A stretch of 63,840 nucleotides of DNA, filler included, from Pelomyxa schiedti (taxonomy: Eukaryota > Protista > Evosea), in NCBI GenBank assembly GCA_020536535.1. It is 8 parts of 8 records of this genome, joined end to end, with 100 filler letters (N's around TTAATTAATTAA, not from the genome) between each part and the next. Parts side by side here need not be neighbours in the genome. Positions count along the whole stretch, not along the records: positions 26,972 to 41,341 come from JAHLWZ010000204.1; 7 more parts are not named here. One strand, 5' to 3'. The notes beneath the pieces were generated by a model. The model had not been told where the DNA came from. It ran no database searches and was given only the letters and a program-made list of their open reading frames with translations. Below, one piece after another: positions 26,972 to 41,441 of this stretch (its first letter is position 1; the number at the start of each line of letters is the position of its first letter). A program made the translations under genes and the position numbers.

Positions 26972-27140
26972 AATCATTGCATGTGGATACAGGCCAATGA
27001 CAGAGTTAAACAGGAAGTTATTGTCAGCAGCAAACACAACTGGAGCGCTCAAGGAAAGTCACATCATAGGTGATGCAAAGCAGGTCAAGAACGTAATGTA
27101 TGCAATATGGGATGCCTATGAAGTAGCCAGGTCAATATAA
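26972..27140 (+). CDS. Allelic copy of the oxidoreductase 3' end (partial)
   Basis: Near-identical to 29055-29223 (IIACGYRP...IGDAKQVKNVMYAIWDAYEVARSI*). Confidence 0.85.
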
Positions 27141-27474
27141 TAAAATAAAAATGCAAACATAGAACATAATCCTTGGGGAAAAAAGAATGCATTTACCTCG
27201 ACTTTCTAAAAAGCAAAGTAAAAAAAAGAAGAGTGTTGGCGTCGGGTGAACTTACCGGGGTCCACAATTTAGAATTCGAAGAAACTCCCTTCAGATCAAA
27301 TCAGCCCAGCAGGTGCCAGCAGCACATTGATCATTTTTATTGTTTTTCACAAAACAAGGAAGGATCACCCTAACTACGCACTCCAAGCGTTTGGTCTGTT
27401 TTCCCTTCGGAAGCATTCAAAAACTGCCTGTGACCGTTACTTATGGGTTCCGAAACTCCTGATTTCCCCTAAGT

Positions 27475-28211
27475 ATGAACGGGGTGATGTGCACGGCCAC
27501 TAGTTCTTTCGGGGTACCTGGTACTGTGGGACAGAAGGAACACAATTTGAGTATGGCTTTGCTGGCAGAGAGAGCGGGCCGATTTAACGGTGGCGCCCTG
27601 TTTGCCGTTGCTGGTTGTTTGGGTGCACTCAATATGGTCCTTTATTAGATATGGCGAGGTACATGAAAGTTGTTGCTGAAAACGCTGATGAGTTGAGTGA
27701 GGATGAGAGGCGTTTATTCTCTGTTGCCTATTCCAATGTCATTGGCTCATACAGAACACCTTGGAGGACACTTTCATCAGTAGAGCAAAAGGTGATGTGG
27801 GCACTGTGGAATCCTCTCCCCACAACTTATTCTTACAGGAAGATGACAGAGGGACACCCACAGATAATCTGAGGAGAGTAAGGGAATACCGGCAAAAGAT
27901 AGAGCAAGAAATGTCTGCAGTATGTGCGGAGGTTCTCACTATTTTAGATACCGTTCTCATCCCAAAGAGTACGACCATAGAGGGAAAAGTGTTCTACCTG
28001 AAAATGTATTTCTGTGCTCCTGTAACACCCTCACTCACAAATGCAGGAAGGGAGACTATTATAGGTACATTGCCAATAACAATACAACTGAAGGCCGGGA
28101 GTCAACTGCATGTGCCATGGAAGCATATAAGGCAGGGTCTGAACTTGCAAAAGGCCTTGCACCAAATCACCCAACGAGGTTGGGTCTGGCACTAAATTTC
28201 AGTGTGTTCTA
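27475..28211 (+). CDS. 14-3-3: 14-3-3 protein, second haplotype (partial, cut by gap)
   Basis: Differs from 31698-32434 by scattered SNPs only. Confidence 0.85.
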
Positions 28212-28311
28212 NNNNNNNNNNNNNNNNNNNNNNNNNNNNNNNNNNNNNNNNNNNNNNNNNNNNNNNNNNNNNNNNNNNNNNNNNNNNNNNNNNNNNNNNN
28301 NNNNNNNNNNN

Positions 28312-29223
28312 TAATATCCGATTGAGGTATCTTGTGCTGTCAACCCGGTATGTGGCCGAGAAGGCGAGTATGGAATAACCGCAGCTCCGATTCGAAAAAG
28401 AGTACTTGTAGTAGGCGGAGGTGTTGCCGGAATGGAGGCCGCTAGAGTCTGCGCTGAAAGAGGGCATACTGTTTCGCTCTATGAAAGAGGGGACAAGTTG
28501 GGCGGAGCTCTTATTCCCGGGTCTGTGCCGGACTTCAAGGCAGATGAAAGGGCCCTAATTAAGTGGTACGAGTTCCAACTGGAACAGCTCCACGTGGCGG
28601 TAACTCTGCGGACTGAGGTTACAGAGTCCCTCATTATAGCATCCCAGCCACAGGTTCTAATAATTGCCACCGGATCCTCCGCAATCGTTCCATCTGTGTT
28701 TGCTGACTCCCCGATTGCCATGAAGGCCTGCGATGCTCTCCTAGAACCCAGCCGGATCAAGTCAGATGCCTCAGTTCTCATAGTAGGAGGAGGCCTTGTA
28801 GGATGCGAAACCGCTCTATGGCTCGTTCAAAGCGGACATTCAGATGTAACCATAGTTGAGCAGGAGGCATCATTGCTCAAAATAGGGGGGCCACTTTGTC
28901 ACGCCAATAGGGACATGCTTCTGGACCTATTGCCACACCACAACGTGAAAGTTATGTTGTCCTCTACTGTTACAAAATCCCTACCTGATAACAGCGGATT
29001 CATCGTCAAGAACCTCACCAACGGAGAAGAATCCACACTGAAAGCACACACGGCAATCATTGCATGTGGATACAGGCCAATGACAGAGTTAAACAGGAAG
29101 TTATTGTCAGCAGCAAACACAACTGGAGCGCTCAAGGAAAGTCACATCATAGGTGATGCAAAGCAGGTCAAGAACATAATGTATGCAATATGGGATGCCT
29201 ATGAAGTAGCCAGGTCAATATAA
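28312..29223 (+). CDS. NADH:flavin oxidoreductase (Old Yellow Enzyme multidomain; 2-enoate/2,4-dienoyl-CoA reductase-like), C-terminal part, intronless
   Basis: SCAVNPVCGRE, RVLVVGGGVAGMEAARVCAERGH, LGGALIPGSVPDFK, IIATGS, LIVGGGLVGCETALWL, IGDAKQVKNIMYAIWDAYEVA; 5' part in gap. Confidence 0.9.
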
Positions 29224-29914
29224 TAAAATAAAAATGCAAAACATAGAACATAATCCTTGGGGAAAAAAGAATGCATTTACCTCGACTTTCTAAAAAGCAA
29301 AGTAAAAAAAGAAGAGTGTTGGCGTCGGGTGAACTTACCGGGGTCCACAATTTAGAATTCGAAGAAACTCCCTTCAGATCAAATCAGCCCAGCAGGTGCC
29401 AGCAACACATGAGAGACAACTCGATTCCGTGGCCGAGTTTCCGACAAAAAGCCTTTTAAGGGAACTTTAGCGAAAAATTGTTTTTTCTGCTTCACTTGTG
29501 GCCTAAATAACTCAGGAAATCGAGCAGATCCTCAGGAGAAAATCCTGGAGATCATTAAACACACTGTAAAGAAATGATTCTAGTGATAAAATATGTGGGG
29601 TGCACACCAGCAGCCTGCCAGAGGATCAGTCAACTTCTGTGAAGTAGTTTTTTGGAAAAATAAATCTGTTGGTGCCGGTGGTTGTGCACTGCGGTGCGGG
29701 TGTTTCGGCTGTAATTGTGCTTGGGAGTTCAAAGTCGTTGGAGTTTTTTTTTTTTTGATGGGCCGGGTACCTGTTATGCTCTTTTTTTGTCTAATTTTCG
29801 AAAATTTTTTTTTAATTGGTACCCCAGCCCCCTCGTAGAACTGTTGCCTCAAGGGCAAATATTAATGCTGGTAGACCAGTGCGATGGAAGGTTTTTTTTT
29901 TTTTTTTTTTTAAA

Positions 29915-29972
<58 letters not shown>

Positions 29973-30045
29973 ATCTCTTACATTGCACTAGGGTCACATT
30001 AAAAAAGGAACCATGCAAGAGGCACAGGTTTATTTTTTTTTTCGA

Positions 30046-30117
30046 ATATATATTCTTATTTGTGTATATATATTCTTATTTGTGTATATATATTGCGATT
30101 TGTGTATATATATTGCG
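30046..30117 (+). repeat. 20-bp tandem repeat (~3.6 copies) inside the TIR element
   Basis: atatatattcttatttgtgt x2, atatatattgcgatttgtgt, atatatattgcg. Confidence 0.9.
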
Positions 30118-31221
30118 CTAAAGGAGACGAAGGTGCAAAATGGAATTGCCCGTAATATTGTGGACCTCACTGAAGATATTACTGTAAATGAAGTTGACAC
30201 CAGAGTTGAAGGTAATTCTAAATAACTTATATAACTACAATGAACAAAATTAAATAGACCCTTCATTTGTGGCAGTTGAGCTGAGTACAGCAAGTGCTGA
30301 GGCAAATATAAACTTGTCACCCCACAAACACACCCCTATCTCGAAGCTTCTTCCCAGGTTGGTGCCTCATTACCAGTTCAGAACCTCTGAACCCAGAACA
30401 CCCAATTTCCATAAAACAAAGTTTTCAATTCCTCACTCCAAAATAAATTACCCTCAACAAACAAATAAATGGAGAATTGTCAAATGCTGCTTGCATGCAT
30501 TGCATAGTGTTGCCCATGACAATGTGGCACTATTGGCTTTACTGCATGACATGCAACACCAAATTGAAAGAGAAGTATTCTCTCATGTGGACATTTCACC
30601 TTCTCCACAAATCTCTGTTCAAGCCACACAAGTTCAAACACTTTTCAGCCAATTTCTCATAAAAACCTCAACAAGTTCAATTCACAAGTTTTTCTCCCAG
30701 GAACCAGAAGAAATAACAATTTCAGTTTCATTGTGAAGTAGAACACTTGCACAGTACCTCCAAGCATACTGGGGGCATATTGCGTTGTAAGCAATTACCT
30801 TCTGAGAAGTGTTTTCAAGTTGTTCCACTTCTTGTTGTGAAAGAAGCAGTTCATTTTGAACAAGAGACTGCAAGAAAACATACACAAGCAGCCAAAACGC
30901 AAGCAGATACATCTATGTTATTTTATTTATTTCAAGTTGGTCATACTGCCACTCTCTTTCCACGATTGACTGTATCATTAATGTCTTCATACTTGAATCA
31001 TGTTCATCTCTCCACTCAAGGGAAACAACCTCTACAATCGAATCACAGAGTATGCTATCTCCACTTACGGTGGATTTCCTATCCCACCAGGAAGAGAACC
31101 TCTCTCTGTCCTTCGTTCTTCCCAACAGACCCACCCAACACATAGCAACCCACCAAAAAGGAGAAGGACACAATGCCAATCCCAGTCGCTCTGATAAAGG
31201 TTTGGTTACCAAGAAAAATTT

Positions 31222-31293
31222 TGCCTACAGCAGAAATCGAACCGGGAACCCTTAGATTAAAATCCTCCGGTCTTCCCGCTCGGCTACAAAATC
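31222..31293 (-). pseudogene. tRNA-Lys(UUU)-like degenerate sequence
   Basis: 72 nt with tRNA spacing, A-box TAGCCGAGCGG, TTTTAATCT anticodon region and GGTTCGATT B-box; stems poorly paired. Confidence 0.55.
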
Positions 31294-31697
31294 TTCGGAT
31301 AAGGTTTTCGCTTTGATTCGACGGCATCAAACCTACAACTGAGATGGTCAAGAAAGGAGGGCGATCGTCTCAGGGATGTGTAGGGTATTTCCCGGTGTGT
31401 GCGCTCCGCCCACTGTTGCTTGTTGCTTGTAACTGTTGCGGGTGGTATTATTGCTACAATCTCCCCTTTTCGAAAAGGAAAAAAAAAGGTAAATCTAGAT
31501 CTATTTTTAGGTTTGTCAAACGCAGGCCGATCAATTGAGTTGTCTCTCATTGATCATTTTTATTGTTTTTCACAAAACAAGGAAGGATCACCCTAACTAC
31601 GCACTCCAAGCGTTTGGTCTGTTTTCCCTTCGGAAGCATTCAAAAACTGCCGGTGACCGTTACTTAGGGGTTCCGAAACTCCTGATTTCCCCTAAGT

Positions 31698-32725
31698 ATG
31701 AACGGGGTGATGTGCGCGGCAACCAGTTCTTTCGGGGTACCTGGTACTGTGGGACAGAAGGAACACAATTTGAGTATGGCTTTGCTGGCAGAGAGAGCGG
31801 GCCGATTTAACGGTGGCGCCCTGTTTGCCGTTTCTGGTTGTTTGGGTGCACTCAATATGGTCCTTTATTAGATATGGCGAGGTACATGAAAGCTGTTGCT
31901 GAAAACGCTGATGAGTTGAGTGAGGATGAGAGGCGTTTATTTTCTGTTGCCTATTCCAATGTCATTGGCTCATACAGAACACCTTGGAGGACACTTTCAT
32001 CAGTAGAGCAAAAGGTGATGTGGGCACTGTGGAATCCTCTCCCCACGACTTATTCTTACAGGAAGATGACAGAGGGACACCCACAGACAATCTGAGGAGA
32101 GTAAGGGAATACCGGCAGAAGATAGAGCAAGAAATGTCTGCAGTATGTGCGGAGGTTCTCACTATTTTAGATACCGTTCTCATCCCAAAGAGCACGACCA
32201 TAGAGGGAAAAGTGTTCTACCTGAAAATGTATTTCTGTGCTCCTGTAACACCCTCACTCACAAATGCAGGAAGGGAGACTATTATAGGTACATTGCCAAT
32301 AACAATACAACTAAAGGCCGGGAGTCAACTGCATGTGCCATGGAAGCATATAAGGCAGGGTCTGAACTTGCAAAAGGCCTTGCACCAAATCACCCAACGA
32401 GGTTGGGTCTGGCACTAAATTTCAGTGTGTTCTACTATGAAATCATGACGTATGCTCCCTCCCCTCCCAGTCTAGTTATATTCATTAAATCAACAGATCA
32501 TATGAGGATGCTTGCAGTGTTGCCCGAAGTGCCCTGAATGATGCAATTTTAGAACAGGAGCATTGTCCACCGTCTGAGAATAGAGACGGTTCTCTCATTA
32601 TGGGCCTCCTCAGGGATAATCTGTCATTATGGACAACAGAAATGGGTATTAAGGAATATCTTCGATTCCCCCTTGCTGAACCGTTTATTGTGATAGGTGA
32701 AGGTGCCGATGCCTGTGACCACTGA
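31698..32725 (+). CDS. 14-3-3: Divergent 14-3-3 protein, multi-exon
   Basis: [81 protein letters not shown]. Confidence 0.92.
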
Positions 32726-32929
32726 TGACTGCTGTTACATATCCAATACCATTGTTGTGCCCAAAGGCACTGGTGCATACAGTACAGTATGTTGTACATT
32801 TGTTGTATCATACACAAAGATATGCTTATGCACCAGTGGCCCAGGTTGTACACAATTAAGATGAGTCATTTTAAAAAAGTTTCGTGTGATGCAATATCTC
32901 ATCATTGATCTGTTTTTTCCAAGCAAGAG

Positions 32930-33905
32930 ATGTACCGAGGCGGTGGTGGCATTGCGTTGAAGCGCTTGTTGTCCGAGTACAAGAGTATGACGTTGATTGT
33001 TGGTTTTTCGAATTATGGGAGCGCACGTGCTCATCCGGGTTTTTTTTTTCCTTCACAGAGGTTACTGAGGACCCACCCCCAGGAGTAACTGCAGGCATGG
33101 GAGTCCAAGTGACGAAGACAAATTATTATTATTTCATCCATTGATTTGATTGATTGATTGTGCCTGCCACTCTTGGCTCCACTTTGTGAATTGACTGCCA
33201 TTTTTATTTTTCTGCAGGGCCGATTGATGAAGCGAACCTGTTTGTATGGGAAGCCCTTGTGATGTGCGTGCTTATTATGGGTTGGCTCTGGTTTGGTTTT
33301 TCTCACTAGTTTTGCAGGGGCCCGCCTGATACCTTGTACAGTGACGGCGTTTTCCGGGCTTTATTGACCTTCCCTCAGGATTATCCATTGAACCCGCCTA
33401 AGGTTTTTTGGAGTAATGTGTTACTTTTTTTTTTTTTAAGTATTAATACCCCGGCAGATGAAATTCACAACTCCCATGTGGCACCCAAACAGTGTGCTAA
33501 TTCTCGTTAATTTTTAATATTTTCTCTCGGCTGACAATATCCAGTCTACCCAAATGGTGAAGTATGTATCAGCATCCTTCACCCTCCCGGCGACGATCCC
33601 AATCACTATGAAACAAGTATTGAGAGGTGGACACCCGTGCAATCCGTGGAAAAGATCTTGCTCTCTGTAATCTCAATGCTCGCAGGTCTGTAATTCAAAC
33701 TCAGTTCAGTTCGTCGTCACTAAAAAGCCCATTTTCCACACAGACCCCAATGATGAGAGCCCAGCCAATCTCGATGCTGCGGTATGTAATAACAATAAAA
33801 GTTATAACAAAACCAACAACTACATAGATAATGTGGAGAAATGACCGAGATGCGTTTGCCAAAAAGGTTCAAAAGACCGTGGAACAAAGTCTTGGCCTGT
33901 CATGA
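32930..33905 (+). CDS. UBE2G2: Ubiquitin-conjugating enzyme E2, Ubc7/UBE2G type, multi-exon
   Basis: [76 protein letters not shown] (includes the Ubc7/Cdc34-type acidic-loop insertion). Confidence 0.93.
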
Positions 33906-34006
33906 TTCAAAAAAAATTAAAATACTCTATGCTATTCTCAAGTACAGATTTCTTCTTCGTGGAAGTTTCTTGGTATTTTTTTCGTCGTCGTTTGGGGGAT
34001 AGAGTG

Positions 34007-35163
34007 ATGGCGGCTAATAACGAGGAGTTGTCGGCCAAGGTCGTTGTCATTGGCAACTCGGGTACCCATCCCATAATCAAAAGAGCCCCGTTGAAAACAC
34101 CATTGAGTTTTCGCGATGTGTTTGTTTATTCAAGTGATTTTTGGAGACTGTGAGGTTAAAGGGGGAAAAGTGTTAAGATGCAATTAGGGTGTGGAAAGAC
34201 CAGTGTTAGTACCATGTATGTTAATGGGACATTTACTACTGAACATGCTATCACTATTGGTGCCTCTTTCATGCAGAAGATAGTGTGAGTTAAGAATTAA
34301 CCTTATGGCATTGGTTTGCGGTTTTCCCAAACCAACTAACAGTATGAAACTAATAGGCAAGTCGGAGTCGACACACTTAAACTGCAAGTAATCCCTCCCT
34401 TGTTCGTATTCAAGCAGTAATTACTTGTAGATTGTGTTATTCCCTTTTCTCCACCAAATATGATTTAATATGTCCAAGTGGGATACTGCCGGTCAGGAGA
34501 GATTCCGATCCCTTACGCCCATGTTGAAATTATCTCGCCACACATCCAAGCTTACAGACAGTTAGGTTTTACAGAGAATCGCAAGCAGCCATTATAGTTG
34601 TGAGTGAAATTTCGTATTATCTATATGACATCTCAAACCCGGTCAGTTTGATGTAACAGATAGGACTTCACTCTTCGAAGTTACCTCATGGCTTAACGGT
34701 ATTACTTTCTCTTTGTATTCGGTGGTAATGATATTTCATCAGAGCTGAAGCAAGCTTCCACTGATATATGTGAGTAAATACATGTCACCTTTCCCTTCCT
34801 TTTTTAGAAAAGTCATTCTACTCTCTAGATGTAGTCGTAGTTGGCAATAAAGTTGACATTTTACCCAGAGTAGTTACAACTGACGAGGGGCAACAATTTG
34901 TTAACTCATTACCACACAATCCCAAACCACTGTATTTTGAAACATCGGCCAAGACTGGTCAAGGTAAAACGACCTCTCTCATTCACCCTGTTCTTATTGT
35001 TATATTCTCAGGAATCTCTGTTCTTTTTGAAACTGTGGCTCGAAAAATAGTTGAGAGAACAAAAATGAATACACCCAACACCACAACAAATGGCCATGAC
35101 GGCTCTCTCCTCATCAAACCCACACCTGCAAATGATTCAAGTCCTGATGATGGGTGCTGTTGA
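34007..35163 (+). CDS. Rab GTPase, Rab5/21/22-like, multi-exon with a probable 3-nt microexon
   Basis: VVVIGNSGVGKTS, TIGASF, WDTAGQERFRSLTPMFYR, VVGNKVD, FETSAKTG, C-terminal GCC*. Confidence 0.92.
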
Positions 35164-35231
35164 ATGAATCCATGTTTATTTCAGAAAGGAAGAAAACAGA
35201 AAAAGTAAAGAAAATGGTGGTGTGTAAATTG

Positions 35232-38200
35232 TCAATTATTATTTTTCTTGGCCAGCACACCAATCCCCGCATTGATAATGGAATCAATGCTACTAGTTGT
35301 ACTTGTTGTTGCTGTTGTTGTGGATGAAGAAGAAGAAGCCGAGGGTGTAGTAGTACTTGATGATTGTGGGGGCATACGTGCAAGTGGAGGTGTTGTTGGG
35401 GTGCTGGTGGTTGTGGCTTTCTTCTTCCTCTGGTTGAAGCGGACACACCGCGGGCACATGCTGGGTATGAAGCAATTCTTGTGGAACACTCCAAAGCACA
35501 GCGGGCACTGAACAGCAACGTTCAACTGTTTATGTTGTTAGTTGCCGGAAATGGGGAAACTAAGAGGGGAGAACACACCTGAAACGGAAACAGCGGGTCC
35601 GGTGATTTGCACACTTCACATATGGATGCTCGAGCACAGCACAACTTGCAAGTTGTAACGTGCTGTGTCCATTTTTCAACAACCTCCTTGACTTGGGGGA
35701 GAACGGCTTCTAGATCAAGGAGATCACCCAGAGAGTATGTCTGCCGGAATGAGTGAGAGGGTTATCTTTATCTTGACGCAATCATTACCTCGGTTGAATT
35801 GTACAAGTAGCTTTGAATACCGCACCTCCTTAATGGGCCTTGAGGGTCCAGGCGTGAACAGGAATAAATAAAATCTTTCAGGTGAGTCAACTGGAGTCGC
35901 GAAGCCTGTGGAAAGTAAGGTAAGAACGGTGAAGTTAGGGTTTTAGGCTACCTTTAATTTTGGCAGTACAGCGACTTTTGTGTATAATGTGGGATTAATT
36001 GCGCCGATATCAAATGTAGGTTCTTGATTAAGTGATGTAAGCAGCTCAACTGCATAGTGACTGACTGGATATCGATTAAAGTCCCTTGGTTTACATTAAG
36101 TGCACAAGAAACATTTCGTTGATGAAAACCAGTTGTGCAGAATTCTAGCGGGAATTATTTCTTTTTCCTTCAAATGACACTTTGCGCAAAAAAACTTCCC
36201 AGTGTATTCGCAGTATAGCGTATCAGAAAACAGTCCTATTTCTAGTTGAAAAAGAAGGAATGAAGAAAAAAGAAATACCAAAGTTCAAGGGAGCCCCACA
36301 GTTATAACATAACTTGTTGGCTGTTTCAGGCTTGGGCTTCTTGTGTACATACAGATGCAATACTTTTCTCGGGGGTGTCCAATTGCTCGAGCCACCGTCT
36401 GTCGTTGTAGAGGAAGGAGTTGTGGTAGTCGGATTGGCAGATGTCGAAACATTGCGTTCAGGTTCCCTGATTGGGGTAGCTGTACTGCTAGCAGTCTTTA
36501 CAGGGGAAATTAAACTGGATTCAGATTTGTTGCCACTTGTGGAAGAGGGTGAAGTGGTGGCAACTGTTGGAACAGTTGGTGTGCTCGCGATAGTATCATT
36601 CTTTGCAACTGCGGGTTGAGAGGTGTTTGGTGGTATCTTCATAAAAAAATGAGACATATGAGGAAAAGAAAATAACAGCCGTACTTTATTTGGGGCTTGA
36701 AGGGACTCCTTAGGAATCTGGGTACCAGAATTACTAGTTTCTGGTACTTTGGTAACCCCTGTCTGCAGTTCTGGGTTGCTTGAAACCTTTATCGCTTGCA
36801 TTGCTGCCTGTGCTTGAGCTCTCACTTGAGCGGATTCTTGAAGCTGGAGGTGTAATTGTTGATGCAAATGTAACTGTAGACTTGGTAGAGTAGATTCTTC
36901 CGGGAGTGGTTCAGCTTTGCTTGGCGGAGATACAATTGGTTGGGCATATTGTGATAGGGTATTTGACTGAATGGGAGGCTGTGAAAGTGCCTGGATAAGT
37001 GGTTGTGTTGCGGGTCGTGGCGAAAGTTTCTGTTGAGGCTGCTGGTTATCAGTTGTATTAACTGAACTTGGGTTGATTGTTGATGCACTCTGTGTAGATT
37101 GTTTTGGCTGTGCCATCTGTGTGGTGTGCGGCACAACACTAGTATTAATGGGGTGTAGTTGAGGTTGTTCATGCGGTTCGGGAGATGTGTGAGACGACAA
37201 TGGTGGAGATTGAAGTTTGGTAATCCCGAGTGGGGGTGTGTGTGGTGGAGATTGCAGCCTACCATTAGACGGTGGAGGTGTGGGGGTATGGAGTGGGGGA
37301 GTTTCGATTGGAGGAATTTCAGAGACAGACTTTTTCAGACTGTCAAGATCCACTTTAAGCTCTCTCGTCTTTGTAATAATTAGATGGTTAAAGGGAAGAG
37401 GAAAAGGGAACCTTATGCAAATTTTCTCGAATTTTTTCGAGATTTTTTTTCAACGCCTCAACTCTGTTCTCTGTAGAAGGCGCAGAAAAATCGGAGACAC
37501 GGAGAGAGGTTATTCCAAACCTTGTGCCACTTGGATCCGGTACTTGTTGTGCACTTGTGTTGGAGACATCTTGTGGTTGAGTGTGAAGTGCATCAGGGTG
37601 CAATGTGTTTGTTTGTGGTAACGAGACTGAGTTGTCCAACACAGTTTTTTGCTCGACACGTTGAGATCCAAGGTTATTAGGATTGTTCAAGCCTGGATCA
37701 ACATCCCTGTTCTATTTTGGATTACATTTGACGACATAGTAAGTTTGGAATAAAGTATACTCACAGGCTTGGCTTTTATCGGTTCCACCGACTCAGCTGG
37801 AGGTTCTTCGTGTATGTTAGGGGTTTGAACTGGTTCTTTTGTTGGGGCTGGACGATCAATGGGTGGTCTTTGATACTGAGACAACAATGACAGTGGTTGT
37901 TTAAGGGGTGCCTGTGAGGCCAATGGCGGCTGGTTGATTTTGGTTTCTGGAGTGTGAGCTAATGATACTGCGGTACTTTTGGTCTCACTTGGAGATATTT
38001 TTTCGTGTACAGGTTCTGGCTGCAGTGGCTGGTGGGATTGCTGGTGTGTCAGTGGGAGTGGTTGAGCTTGGGGAAGTGGTTGCTGCATTTGCAGTGATGG
38101 CTGTTGCATTTGAATGAGTGGTTGTGGGTTTTGTTGTGGTTGTGCAGGAGTGAGTTGTACGGGATGAGTCGGTTGTATGAGGGGTGGAGGAAGTTCCGCA

Positions 38201-39546
38201 GGTTGATTTCCTATGTCTTGGAGATTCACGTTATTTGATGGTATTTCTTGGGTGGCTGCCGGGACTTGCTGTGTAGTGTCTGAATATTGAGGAAGAAGAG
38301 CCTTGGGTTGAGTCATTAGGGGCTGATTCATTGGAGGCTCTGTTGGTTGCGCTGCCGGCTGCGATGGCAGAGGTGGGTGTGAAGAATTGTCTGGACCTTC
38401 TATCACAATGACCCGTGCTTGCCGTTTCCGTTTCCCTCGTCCTGTTGGGCCACTTCCCTAAAACATTCATAAGTAAAACAGCTTGAATTATGGGAATGCA
38501 ACATGTGAGCCACTGGTAACCTGAACTGAGGACGAGCTGGGCTCTGTAAGAAGGTGCAAAAGAAACTGAGAAATACCAGTCGACTGCCATGGGCTCAGCA
38601 GGAGCATCAAGCAGTGGGGTATTAGTATTGAGGGCAAAATGTAACGGGGAGAGGCCACTTAATAGTCCCAAGGCCTGTTCCCTGGCGTCCGTACTGCACA
38701 TTATCGCGTGGTCTTCGTATAGGGTCCTATTTTATTTTACATACTGATTGGATAAAATGCAAACGTCGAACACATACTTTGGATTATTCCCAATGAGTTC
38801 TTGAATTTGGGTCTCAAGACTACCTGCATTTAGACCTGTTCTGATCCAAGCTCTTAAATAGCCGTCATCAGTCTGAACCTGGTAATGTGATAGGCCCATT
38901 ATCATTTTAATTTATTTTTTTTAATTACATTAGACAAAGATGGCAATGCAGAAGATAGAGATTTTCCCGTAGACAAGCCAAATAAACTTGACTGTTTACT
39001 GCGTTGAACCAACGCACCAATGCTTTCTATAGGTTTTTAACATAACAAAACTGCATAGAAGTTGTACTTTTGGCACCAAATAGCAAAATTCTTTCGACCA
39101 CCAAGCACAAACACCGTGATTCATTGTATCTATCATCAAAAACCTTTCCCTGTTTTTTGAAGTCAACAAAAAGCAAGTCGCCACCAACACAAAAAGACCC
39201 AATAAAAAAGGGGGAATGCGGCTACGTGATAGCTAATTTCTAATCTATTCAAAACTTCTCCTACGCCCAAGGAAAAAAAAAGAAAAAGACAGCAAACACA
39301 AATTGGCAATCGACGTCTCTAGTTACTACATTTGCCTCAACATGAGCAGACAGCAACGCGTTTACGCACTGCACCAGATCGTCCATCATACGACCCCTGT
39401 CTCTCGTCACCCCCTCGCCGACTCCCCCACTCATCATCGTCGATTATTATTACTCCTAGAAATTATTCACTCTTGGGTCCCTGCCTTGCTCCCCTTCACA
39501 CTTTTTGTTTTCAAAGAATGCCTGTTTGGGACTTGGAGCGCATCAT
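35232..39546 (-). CDS. RUN domain + Pro/Gln-rich linker + Rubicon-homology zinc-binding domain (PLEKHM1/Rubicon/DEF8-like); start approximate
   Basis: LCLVVERILLFGAK and RAWIRTGLN...LLSGLSPLHFAL (RUN); CYNCGAPL, YCEYTGKFFCAKCH...IPARILHNW and CPLCFGVFHKNC...CPRC (Rubicon homology). Confidence 0.85.
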
Positions 39547-39619
39547 CGCAACGGACCGAAACAAAACTGATCAGATCTGGAGTGCCCGAAACTTCTGGTC
39601 TGTGTGCAGTCCACGACCA

Positions 39620-41014
39620 CTAATAGCACATTCTGTGAACGAGCCGTGCTCCGCCTTCCTCGTAATACTCCTCACTGGATATGAGCCTCACGTTGAAATC
39701 ACCCAGTGACGCCAGGATAGACCCACCCGTCCATGCTGAGTACTTCTTCTGTGTGGGTGTGCTGGTTGCTGTGCAGGGCCCGCTCACTTGTATTTCTTCA
39801 TATTCGATGTGTGGTGCTGTTTCTGCTACTGGACTTGAGGTGGCTGTGCTAGTACTCGTTGTTGATGATGGTGGCTGTTGGTGTGAGGTGATGAGAGAGT
39901 GTAGCTCAGCGGATAGGCGGGGAGCTAGGCCCGGCAACAGTGAATTGGCACCACCTAGAACGACATTGTTGAGAAGCTGCTTGTGCAGGTCCGGGTGAGA
40001 CCGAAGGATGGATTCTACGCAGGCCCGGTGAATTCCATCTGGCTGTTGAGACTTTGAGGTGGGGTGCCGTGGAGATAGAATACAGGAAGGCCGGAATAAT
40101 GCCTCGGCACACCGGAAGTGCTCGTTGGTGATTTCGCGCCCATCAGGAAGCTCGAAGAGCCGCTTGGAGGAAGTGGATTCCATTTCAGAATCAAATGCGG
40201 CAGAAACGTAGCAGCGAGTTTCTTTGAAGTTCCGAAGATCAGTTGGACCTGGGGACACGTGTGTAGGGGTGTCACCTTCTTCGGCGGTCTGATAGTTCCA
40301 ACCGCGGGCATTTAGCATTAGGCGCAAGCACTCGCTGATGTCTGAACCAGCCAAATCCAGCCGGGTAGAGGAGTGTGGAATAGCGCAGCCTTCGTATACC
40401 GGCACCACACTTGTTACGCCGTGGCCGCTCTCAATAGCTAATCCAGTTGTACGGCCTGACGGATAGAGTGAAAGTACTGCCTGATTGGCGAAGTATGCAC
40501 CGGGGAAATGGTAGGTCTCAAACACCCGTGTTATGAGGTTCTCTCTGATGTTTGCTGGGCTGAGTGGTGTTTCTGCAATCAGAAGTGGGTTGCTTGTAAT
40601 GCTTCCGGAGGCGACATTGAAGAAAGTATAGTTCAGTACCAGGTGCTGGAATAGTGTGAACTGACGGTGACAGGAAGGAAAAAGTAAGTACCATGAAATC
40701 CCAATTGTTAATTAGGCCCCTCTCAACTGGATGTATGAGGTTGTAAGTCCTCCTGTTATTAGCAGCCTCATCCCCAACCGGCCTCTTTCCTCCTCCAAAG
40801 ATCATGCACCTCAGATCTCCCACAACAGTCTGTGAAATGTTTGTGAAAAGAAGTCAATAACGTATTTTGGTTAAAGCGTCATTTGAAATTGAAACGATGA
40901 ATACAATACAGGGAAAACGAATGACGGTTCCGTGAGCAGACCCGGGGGATCGTTGGCATCCACATTGAACCCAGCCTTGGTTGTCTCTGTCCCAAAGTCC
41001 ACAACGTATGTCAT
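39620..41014 (-). CDS. Divergent actin-related protein
   Basis: YVVDFGTETTKAG, VGDEA, LIAETPLSP, LSLYPSGRTTGLAIESGHGVTSVVPVYEG, ELPDG, RFRCAEALF-like HFRCAEALF, SAWTGGSILASL, EYYEEGG. Confidence 0.88.
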
Positions 41015-41441
41015 CGCAATCTTGGGGGAAAAATTCCGACCGGTGTTGTTTGTTGGCCTTTCGGTTATGCTTCGTCTCTTACCAACCTTTTTTTTCTGAG
41101 GAAAGACTGCGGAAACCAGGTGAGCAAAATCAACAGTTCATGAGCGCTCATTAGTTATCAACTTCAAGGAACGTGGTCCATTTTAGGAAGGAGGCTTTCG
41201 ATACCAATGTAATGTGTGGTTGTGGCAATTTGTGAAAAGAATCACTCTTTATTGAATGTGGCCATGTTGTGTAGAGCTTTTGCGTTAAACCCTGTCATTA
41301 GCATCTGCTCTAATGTGTGTGGGTGCAATTGGCTTCGTAATNNNNNNNNNNNNNNNNNNNNNNNNNNNNNNNNNNNNNNNNNNNNTTAATTAATTAANNN
41401 NNNNNNNNNNNNNNNNNNNNNNNNNNNNNNNNNNNNNNNNN

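Follow-up and report, generated by a model that had tools for sequence, protein, structure and literature searches.

A probable polymorphic transposon insertion and its empty site in a scaffold of the archamoeba Pelomyxa schiedti

Transposons that move by a cut-and-paste mechanism are, from sequence alone, recognized most securely where a filled insertion site can be compared with an empty one. Here, we describe such a pair in a 63,840-nt stretch of DNA from Pelomyxa schiedti (“the window”), within which positions 26972–41341 are the whole of scaffold JAHLWZ010000204.1 (14370 bp, assembly GCA_020536535.1). The scaffold contains a 2138-bp element with terminal inverted repeats (TIRs) at 29411–31548, together with a second version of the same locus from which the element is cleanly missing. 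We interpret the pair as a real polymorphic insertion of a TIR transposon, i.e., a non-autonomous, cut-and-paste element that fills one allele and leaves the other empty, and we put the probability of this interpretation at roughly 80%. A first-pass annotation of the window had proposed that a TIR element occupies one version of this locus and is missing from the other. The filled/empty pair bears this out, and the coordinates given there (the 2138-bp element, its boundaries, and the empty site) all proved correct on rechecking. A filled/empty site pair is the best evidence that sequence alone can offer for a mobile element, its exact ends, and its target.

The empty site lies in a small contig at the start of the scaffold. 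The features concerned are as follows.

26972–28211, plus strand: contig of 1240 bp holding the alternative allele with the empty site; it has 17 differences from the main haplotype, and its tandem placement before the main contig is wrong.
27326–27327, no strand: unoccupied target AT in the context C/AT/T; the closest allele-specific variants are at 27322 and 27429.
28212–28311, no strand: scaffold gap of 100 N between the small contig and the main contig.

The small contig aligns to 356 bp of the left flank of the element and to 886 bp of the right flank. It runs straight through the junction (...gcagcacATtgatc...) with one AT, confirming the clean empty site proposed at 27326–27327. It had also been said to match both flanks apart from single-nucleotide polymorphisms (SNPs); this is correct, with the addition that the 17 differences from the main contig, found in both flanks, comprise 15 SNPs and two 1-bp indels in A runs. 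The variants closest to the junction are 4 bp to its left (27322) and 102 bp to its right (27429), and single 121-mers hold both of these variants plus the junction. Outside the outermost variants, the two contigs are identical for exactly 121 bases on either side. For the assembly, SPAdes was run in single-cell mode with a maximum k-mer of 121, and contigs were joined through RNA-seq read pairs using P_RNA_scaffolder (PMC8887013). The 121 matching bases on each side equal the largest SPAdes k-mer, which marks the small contig as the second branch of a de Bruijn bubble (k = 121). In the main contig, the corresponding region runs from 29055 to ~32430 (29055–32432), and the small contig is its other allele. 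Both alleles are in one scaffold because the RNA-seq scaffolder put the bubble branch before the main contig; we infer that the linking read pairs came from the transcript of one of the two genes that flank the element, encoding a 14-3-3 protein and a 2-enoate reductase-like protein (see below).

Pelomyxa is multinucleate, and “polymorphic” may here mean heterozygosity within a nucleus, differences between nuclei, or differences among the cells that were sequenced. The assembly pooled seven micromanipulated cells, and the culture behind it was non-clonal (PMC8887013). This history lends some support to a different account, to which we give a small share of the probability, in which the two versions are not alleles but recent duplicates of the locus, or derive from different cells or nuclei of the culture. 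The two versions diverge by ~1.7% across the 998 bp from the first variant to the last, which suits either account and points to a substantial level of heterozygosity, or of variation between cells, in the SKADARSKE culture. The way in which the small contig rejoins the main sequence at k-mer length at both ends argues for alleles, whereas a dispersed duplicate would run on into different flanks. The identity of the element would in any case be unchanged, since its ends could be defined just as well from a paralogous empty site.

The ends of the element have the structure expected of a TIR transposon. The element and its terminal features are listed here.

29409–29410, no strand: AT, left copy of the target-site duplication as we read the sequence.
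29411–31548, no strand: inserted element, non-autonomous, 2138 bp, with boundaries taken from alignment to the empty allele.
29411–29448, plus strand: left TIR, 12 nt perfect and 38 nt imperfect.
31512–31548, minus strand: right TIR, 12 nt perfect and 37 nt imperfect.
31549–31550, no strand: AT, right copy of the target-site duplication, read in the same way.

The element starts with GAGAGACAACTC, and its far end (31537–31548) is the exact reverse complement of these 12 nt. With two mismatches allowed, this 12-mer has only two occurrences in the window, one at each end of the element. A gapped alignment of one end against the other pairs 38 nt with 37 nt, with 29 matches and a score of 30; the best of 500 shuffles scored 26. 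The perfect 12-bp and imperfect ~40-bp TIR of the first-pass annotation is therefore well founded. When the flanking AT is included, a repeat finder reports arms at 29409–29426 and 31533–31550 that are 18 nt long and 94% complementary. The chance of finding a 12-bp perfect inverted repeat exactly at both boundaries is ~4^-12 (~6e-8), a figure that applies because the empty allele fixes the boundaries independently of the repeat. The G+C content of the element is 39% vs 45% for the flanks. We found no subterminal repeat motifs in the element, and no internal repeats besides simple ones.

AT is present at both ends of the element, at 29409–29410 and 31549–31550, as had been noted before. The junctions read cacAT/GAGAG and CTCTC/ATtga (slashes mark the boundaries), and the target in the empty allele is a single AT in the context C/AT/T (gcacATtgat). 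The best reading of these junctions is a 2-bp duplication of AT; a 2-bp staggered cut is the simpler event. A transposase encoded elsewhere in the P. schiedti genome would bind the inverted repeats and excise the element, which would then be joined to an AT target whose two strands had been cut 2 nt apart; repair of these staggered ends would duplicate the AT. We hypothesize that the element was active recently. Its behavior is ordinary for transposons, in an organism without described transposons.

Harbinger-related transposons make duplications of 0, 2, or 3 bp (PMC12730594). Within this broad relationship, ISL2EU transposons have AT target-site duplications (PMC4482050, PMC4122938). A preference for the extended target A/AT/T was derived from many ISL2EU copies, the ends usually begin with GG, and the inverted repeats range from 6 to 259 bp (PMC4482050). 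The defining proteins of the group are a THAP/HTH-DDE transposase, with a catalytic core that clusters with ISL2EU, and a YqaJ exonuclease, for which autonomous copies have a second gene. The P. schiedti element resembles ISL2EU in its AT duplication (read from one copy, with which a zero-duplication reading is compatible), in its short inverted-repeat ends, which are within the reported range, and in its AT-containing target. It differs in that this copy has neither a THAP-DDE transposase gene nor a YqaJ exonuclease gene among the 19 open frames that we scanned with Pfam. Because an AT duplication is the signature of ISL2EU among the transposon groups checked, an enzyme of this type (PIF/Harbinger-ISL2EU-Spy, or PHIS, superfamily) would be our best guess for the mobilizing activity, albeit a tentative one. 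We treat the element as an unclassified TIR transposon working in the ISL2EU manner, its membership of ISL2EU being possible but doubtful. It is somewhat unlikely, on present evidence, that the element represents either a recently mobile ISL2EU lineage in an amoebozoan or an undescribed superfamily (one with AT duplications, or with TG...CA ends and no duplication). If true, the former would extend ISL2EU beyond animals for the first time, and either the group would have to be of ancient eukaryotic origin or Archamoebae would have acquired it horizontally.

Several observations weigh against the interpretation as a whole or in its parts. First, AT is its own reverse complement, and the junctions are equally compatible with an element with TG...CA ends that went in between A and T and duplicated nothing. 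If the two ends are offset by one base, a 3-bp duplication of CAT is formally possible, albeit less plausible. Second, insertion into one allele and precise excision from the other both fit the data. Third, a single copy of the element is known, from searches that covered the 14.4-kb scaffold and 19 kb of another P. schiedti scaffold. Fourth, the element departs from ISL2EU in three respects: the target C/AT/T has the 3′ T but not the 5′ A, as judged from one site only; the ends begin with GA rather than GG, a weak criterion given that GG is only usual; and ISL2EU has been reported from animals only, whereas the host here is an amoebozoan. The ISL2EU-type AT duplication suggested by the first-pass annotation hence agrees with the published description of the group (PMC4482050) in the duplicated dinucleotide, but only half of the extended target and a different first dinucleotide of the ends are found.

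The palindromic AT leaves two options that had already been recognized, GAG...CTC ends with a duplication or TG...CA ends without one, and both are indeed compatible with the empty site. In the latter, the same transposon, 5′-TGAGAGAC...GTCTCTCA-3′, would lie precisely between A and T. We consider this rather improbable, although the inverted repeat does read through the palindromic AT (18 nt at 94%), and transposons that make no duplication exist in the same superfamily (PMC4122938). Such an element would either be Spy-like, insertion in the Spy group being between AAA and TTT, or represent a new TG...CA kind. To our knowledge, TG...CA-ended elements all make 4–6 bp duplications, which counts against this option, as does the greater simplicity of a 2-bp staggered cut. 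The target is also wrong for Spy, which makes no duplication and inserts within AAATTT (PMC4122938), whereas the site here is CACATTGA, i.e., CACA/TTGA and not AAA/TTT. We rejected Spy because the empty site (gcacATtgat) lacks the AAA/TTT arrangement.

Other groups can be set aside with the AT duplication as the favored reading. Tc1/mariner transposons duplicate TA. Helitrons have 5′-TC and 3′-CTRR ends, a 3′ hairpin, and no inverted-repeat ends, and insert between A and T; they are excluded by ends that read TG...CA or GAG...CTC with a 12-bp perfect inverted repeat. PHISTA, a fungal Harbinger-like lineage, also duplicates TA (PMC12730594). Tc1/mariner and PHISTA share with the P. schiedti element a 2-bp duplication and inverted-repeat ends, but are excluded because AT is duplicated here and there is no TA at the junctions. 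Canonical PIF/Harbinger is excluded by its 3-bp TWA duplication; the duplication here is AT, or CAT if the ends are read as unequal. Among non-autonomous deletion derivatives, the closest likeness is to long elements of the miniature inverted-repeat transposable element (MITE) kind, with which the element shares ends of a family type, the lack of a transposase, an AT-rich interior containing simple repeats, and polymorphism for presence or absence. At 2138 bp, however, the element is above the typical size of MITEs.

Amplification of whole genomes with phi29-type enzymes can create chimeras. The DNA of each P. schiedti cell was amplified with a phi29-based kit before assembly in single-cell mode (PMC8887013), and the earlier worry that the empty junction might come from chimeric reads was apt for such material. 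It is, however, very improbable that the empty site is an artefact, whether an amplification chimera or an assembly error that skipped the element, rather than a natural empty allele. The 17 allele-specific differences flank the junction, the closest at 4 bp and 102 bp, and would be missing from a chimera formed on the filled haplotype; the variants on both sides tie the empty site to the other haplotype, which makes an amplification chimera unlikely. The phased SNPs are joined in this by the k = 121 signature. A chimera would, moreover, have to break exactly at both transposon ends and keep one AT. Equally improbable is a one-off indel of non-mobile DNA with chance inverted-repeat ends, e.g., a deletion between AT microhomologies: only a single copy was seen and the interior has no recognizable gene, but a 12-bp perfect inverted repeat sits at both breakpoints (chance ~6e-8) and continues imperfectly to ~38 nt.

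The interior of the element contains simple repeats and a tRNA-like stretch.

29892–29967, plus strand: poly-T tract in the element with a 26-bp period (T20 AAA TTT), 2.8 copies.
30046–30114, plus strand: 20-bp tandem repeat in the element, 3.5 copies.
31223–31290, minus strand: degenerate tRNA-like stretch of 68 nt, not credible as a tRNA gene.

The long poly-T runs and the 20-bp tandem repeat had both been seen in the first pass and are real. Likewise, the reported lack of an open reading frame for a DDE transposase holds: we scanned 19 open frames of 33–160 aa (all of those of at least 54 aa, plus one short candidate exon) against Pfam and obtained only sub-threshold noise and no family, and there is no transposase-like open frame in the 2138-bp element. 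A 155-aa frame has no relatives in an index of 5.8 billion proteins. A 160-aa frame has one match (E = 1.6e-4) among 1.84 billion cluster representatives; we judged it spurious, the matched protein having four repeats over which four marginal alignments were summed. Three overlapping plus-strand frames of 131–160 codons are open within 30254–31252. A codon-usage score trained on host open frames is mildly positive for all three, but does not separate the element frames from either coding sequence or background. This points to a compositional lack of stop codons and not to a gene. Between 29620 and 31548, the part of the element for which we consulted the public annotation, no gene is annotated. 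The element is classed as non-autonomous because it is without a recognizable transposase or other coding content.

The tRNA-like sequence mentioned in the first-pass annotation is present, but only in a weak sense. ARAGORN reports no tRNA in the element at default settings; at a 70% threshold, it reports a 68-nt tRNA-Lys(ttt)-like candidate at 31223–31290 (minus strand). This stretch contains motifs resembling box A and box B, with a T5 run after them. The Rfam tRNA model gave no match here, not even when 141 bp were searched at E<=10, and the predicted fold of the stretch is a long hairpin with no cloverleaf. We therefore rejected a tRNA gene, on the failure of default ARAGORN and the Rfam tRNA model and on the hairpin fold; the stretch is at best a decayed tRNA-derived fragment. 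Separately, Rfam gave a match to U8 snoRNA at 31469–31603 (minus strand) with 25.8 bits vs a threshold of 41. We regard it as noise: the score falls short of the family threshold, and the matched stretch runs across the right end of the element into host DNA.

We looked for other copies in the window, in 19 kb of another P. schiedti scaffold, and in metagenome, prokaryote-genome, and viral collections. The 14.4-kb scaffold has no further copy, and the 19 kb of the other scaffold gave poly-T matches only. A 24-nt end pattern had no matches in the metagenome or viral collections; its one match, in a haloarchaeal genome, was put down to chance. An 18-nt pattern that includes the AT matched 25 metagenome loci. 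These, too, are chance matches: similarity stops at the pattern, none of the loci has a credible partner end, and BLAST does not match any of them to the element. One of the loci has a lone 10/12 match to the opposite end, 3.9 kb away. A literature search for the 12-mer GAGAGACAACTC returned unrelated papers only, apparently by coincidence.

We found no transposon survey of Pelomyxa, Mastigamoeba, or free-living Archamoebae in the literature. The P. schiedti genome paper and two of its supplementary files do not mention transposons (PMC8887013). The earlier suggestion that the family is undescribed in archamoebae is accordingly true only in a trivial sense, there being no published Pelomyxa transposon survey that we could find. 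The 38-bp ends provide a ready query with which to catalogue the family in the P. schiedti assembly, and such a catalogue would test for ISL2EU-type transposons outside animals.

The element sits in the spacer between a 2-enoate reductase-like gene and a 14-3-3 gene.

28312–29223, plus strand: 2-enoate reductase-like gene, 3′ part, cut by the scaffold gap; its stop codon is ~185 bp before the insertion.
31874–32725, plus strand: 14-3-3 gene, spliced and annotated; its start codon is 323 bp after the insertion.

Because the insertion is only 323 bp before the 14-3-3 start codon, it could alter 14-3-3 expression. The differences between the two versions of the locus include changes in the 14-3-3 gene region.

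The opening of scaffold JAHLWZ010000204.1 with an allelic bubble contig and 100 N is a scaffolding artefact. Two genes are partly doubled as a result: the 2-enoate reductase-like gene at its 3′ end, and the 14-3-3 gene in its first exons. As an error in a public assembly, it may mislead gene counts and annotation.

The reductase fragment (28312–29223) encodes a 2-enoate reductase/FAD-dependent oxidoreductase over 302 codons with no intron. Its closest relatives are all bacterial or metagenomic, with <=52% identity, making it a candidate for a gene of bacterial origin in an anaerobic amoeba. That its relatives are only bacterial also suggests that reads of P. schiedti are absent from the protein index.

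Further along the scaffold, the “actin 2” gene (39623–40525, minus strand) encodes a divergent actin with a Ser/Thr/Pro-rich insertion near its C-terminal part. It has 66% identity to its paralogue “actin 4” and ~40% to conventional actins. This actin exon (39623–40525) is 100% identical to “actin 2 [Pelomyxa schiedti]”, which corroborates the archamoeba host. Between the 14-3-3 and actin genes, the region 36223–38406 (minus strand) has Pro/Gln/Ser/Thr-rich open frames of 376 and 239 aa, i.e., low-complexity coding sequence. Both frames fall inside an annotated 1139-aa protein with RUN and RH domains, and the region has a strong positive GC skew on the plus strand.

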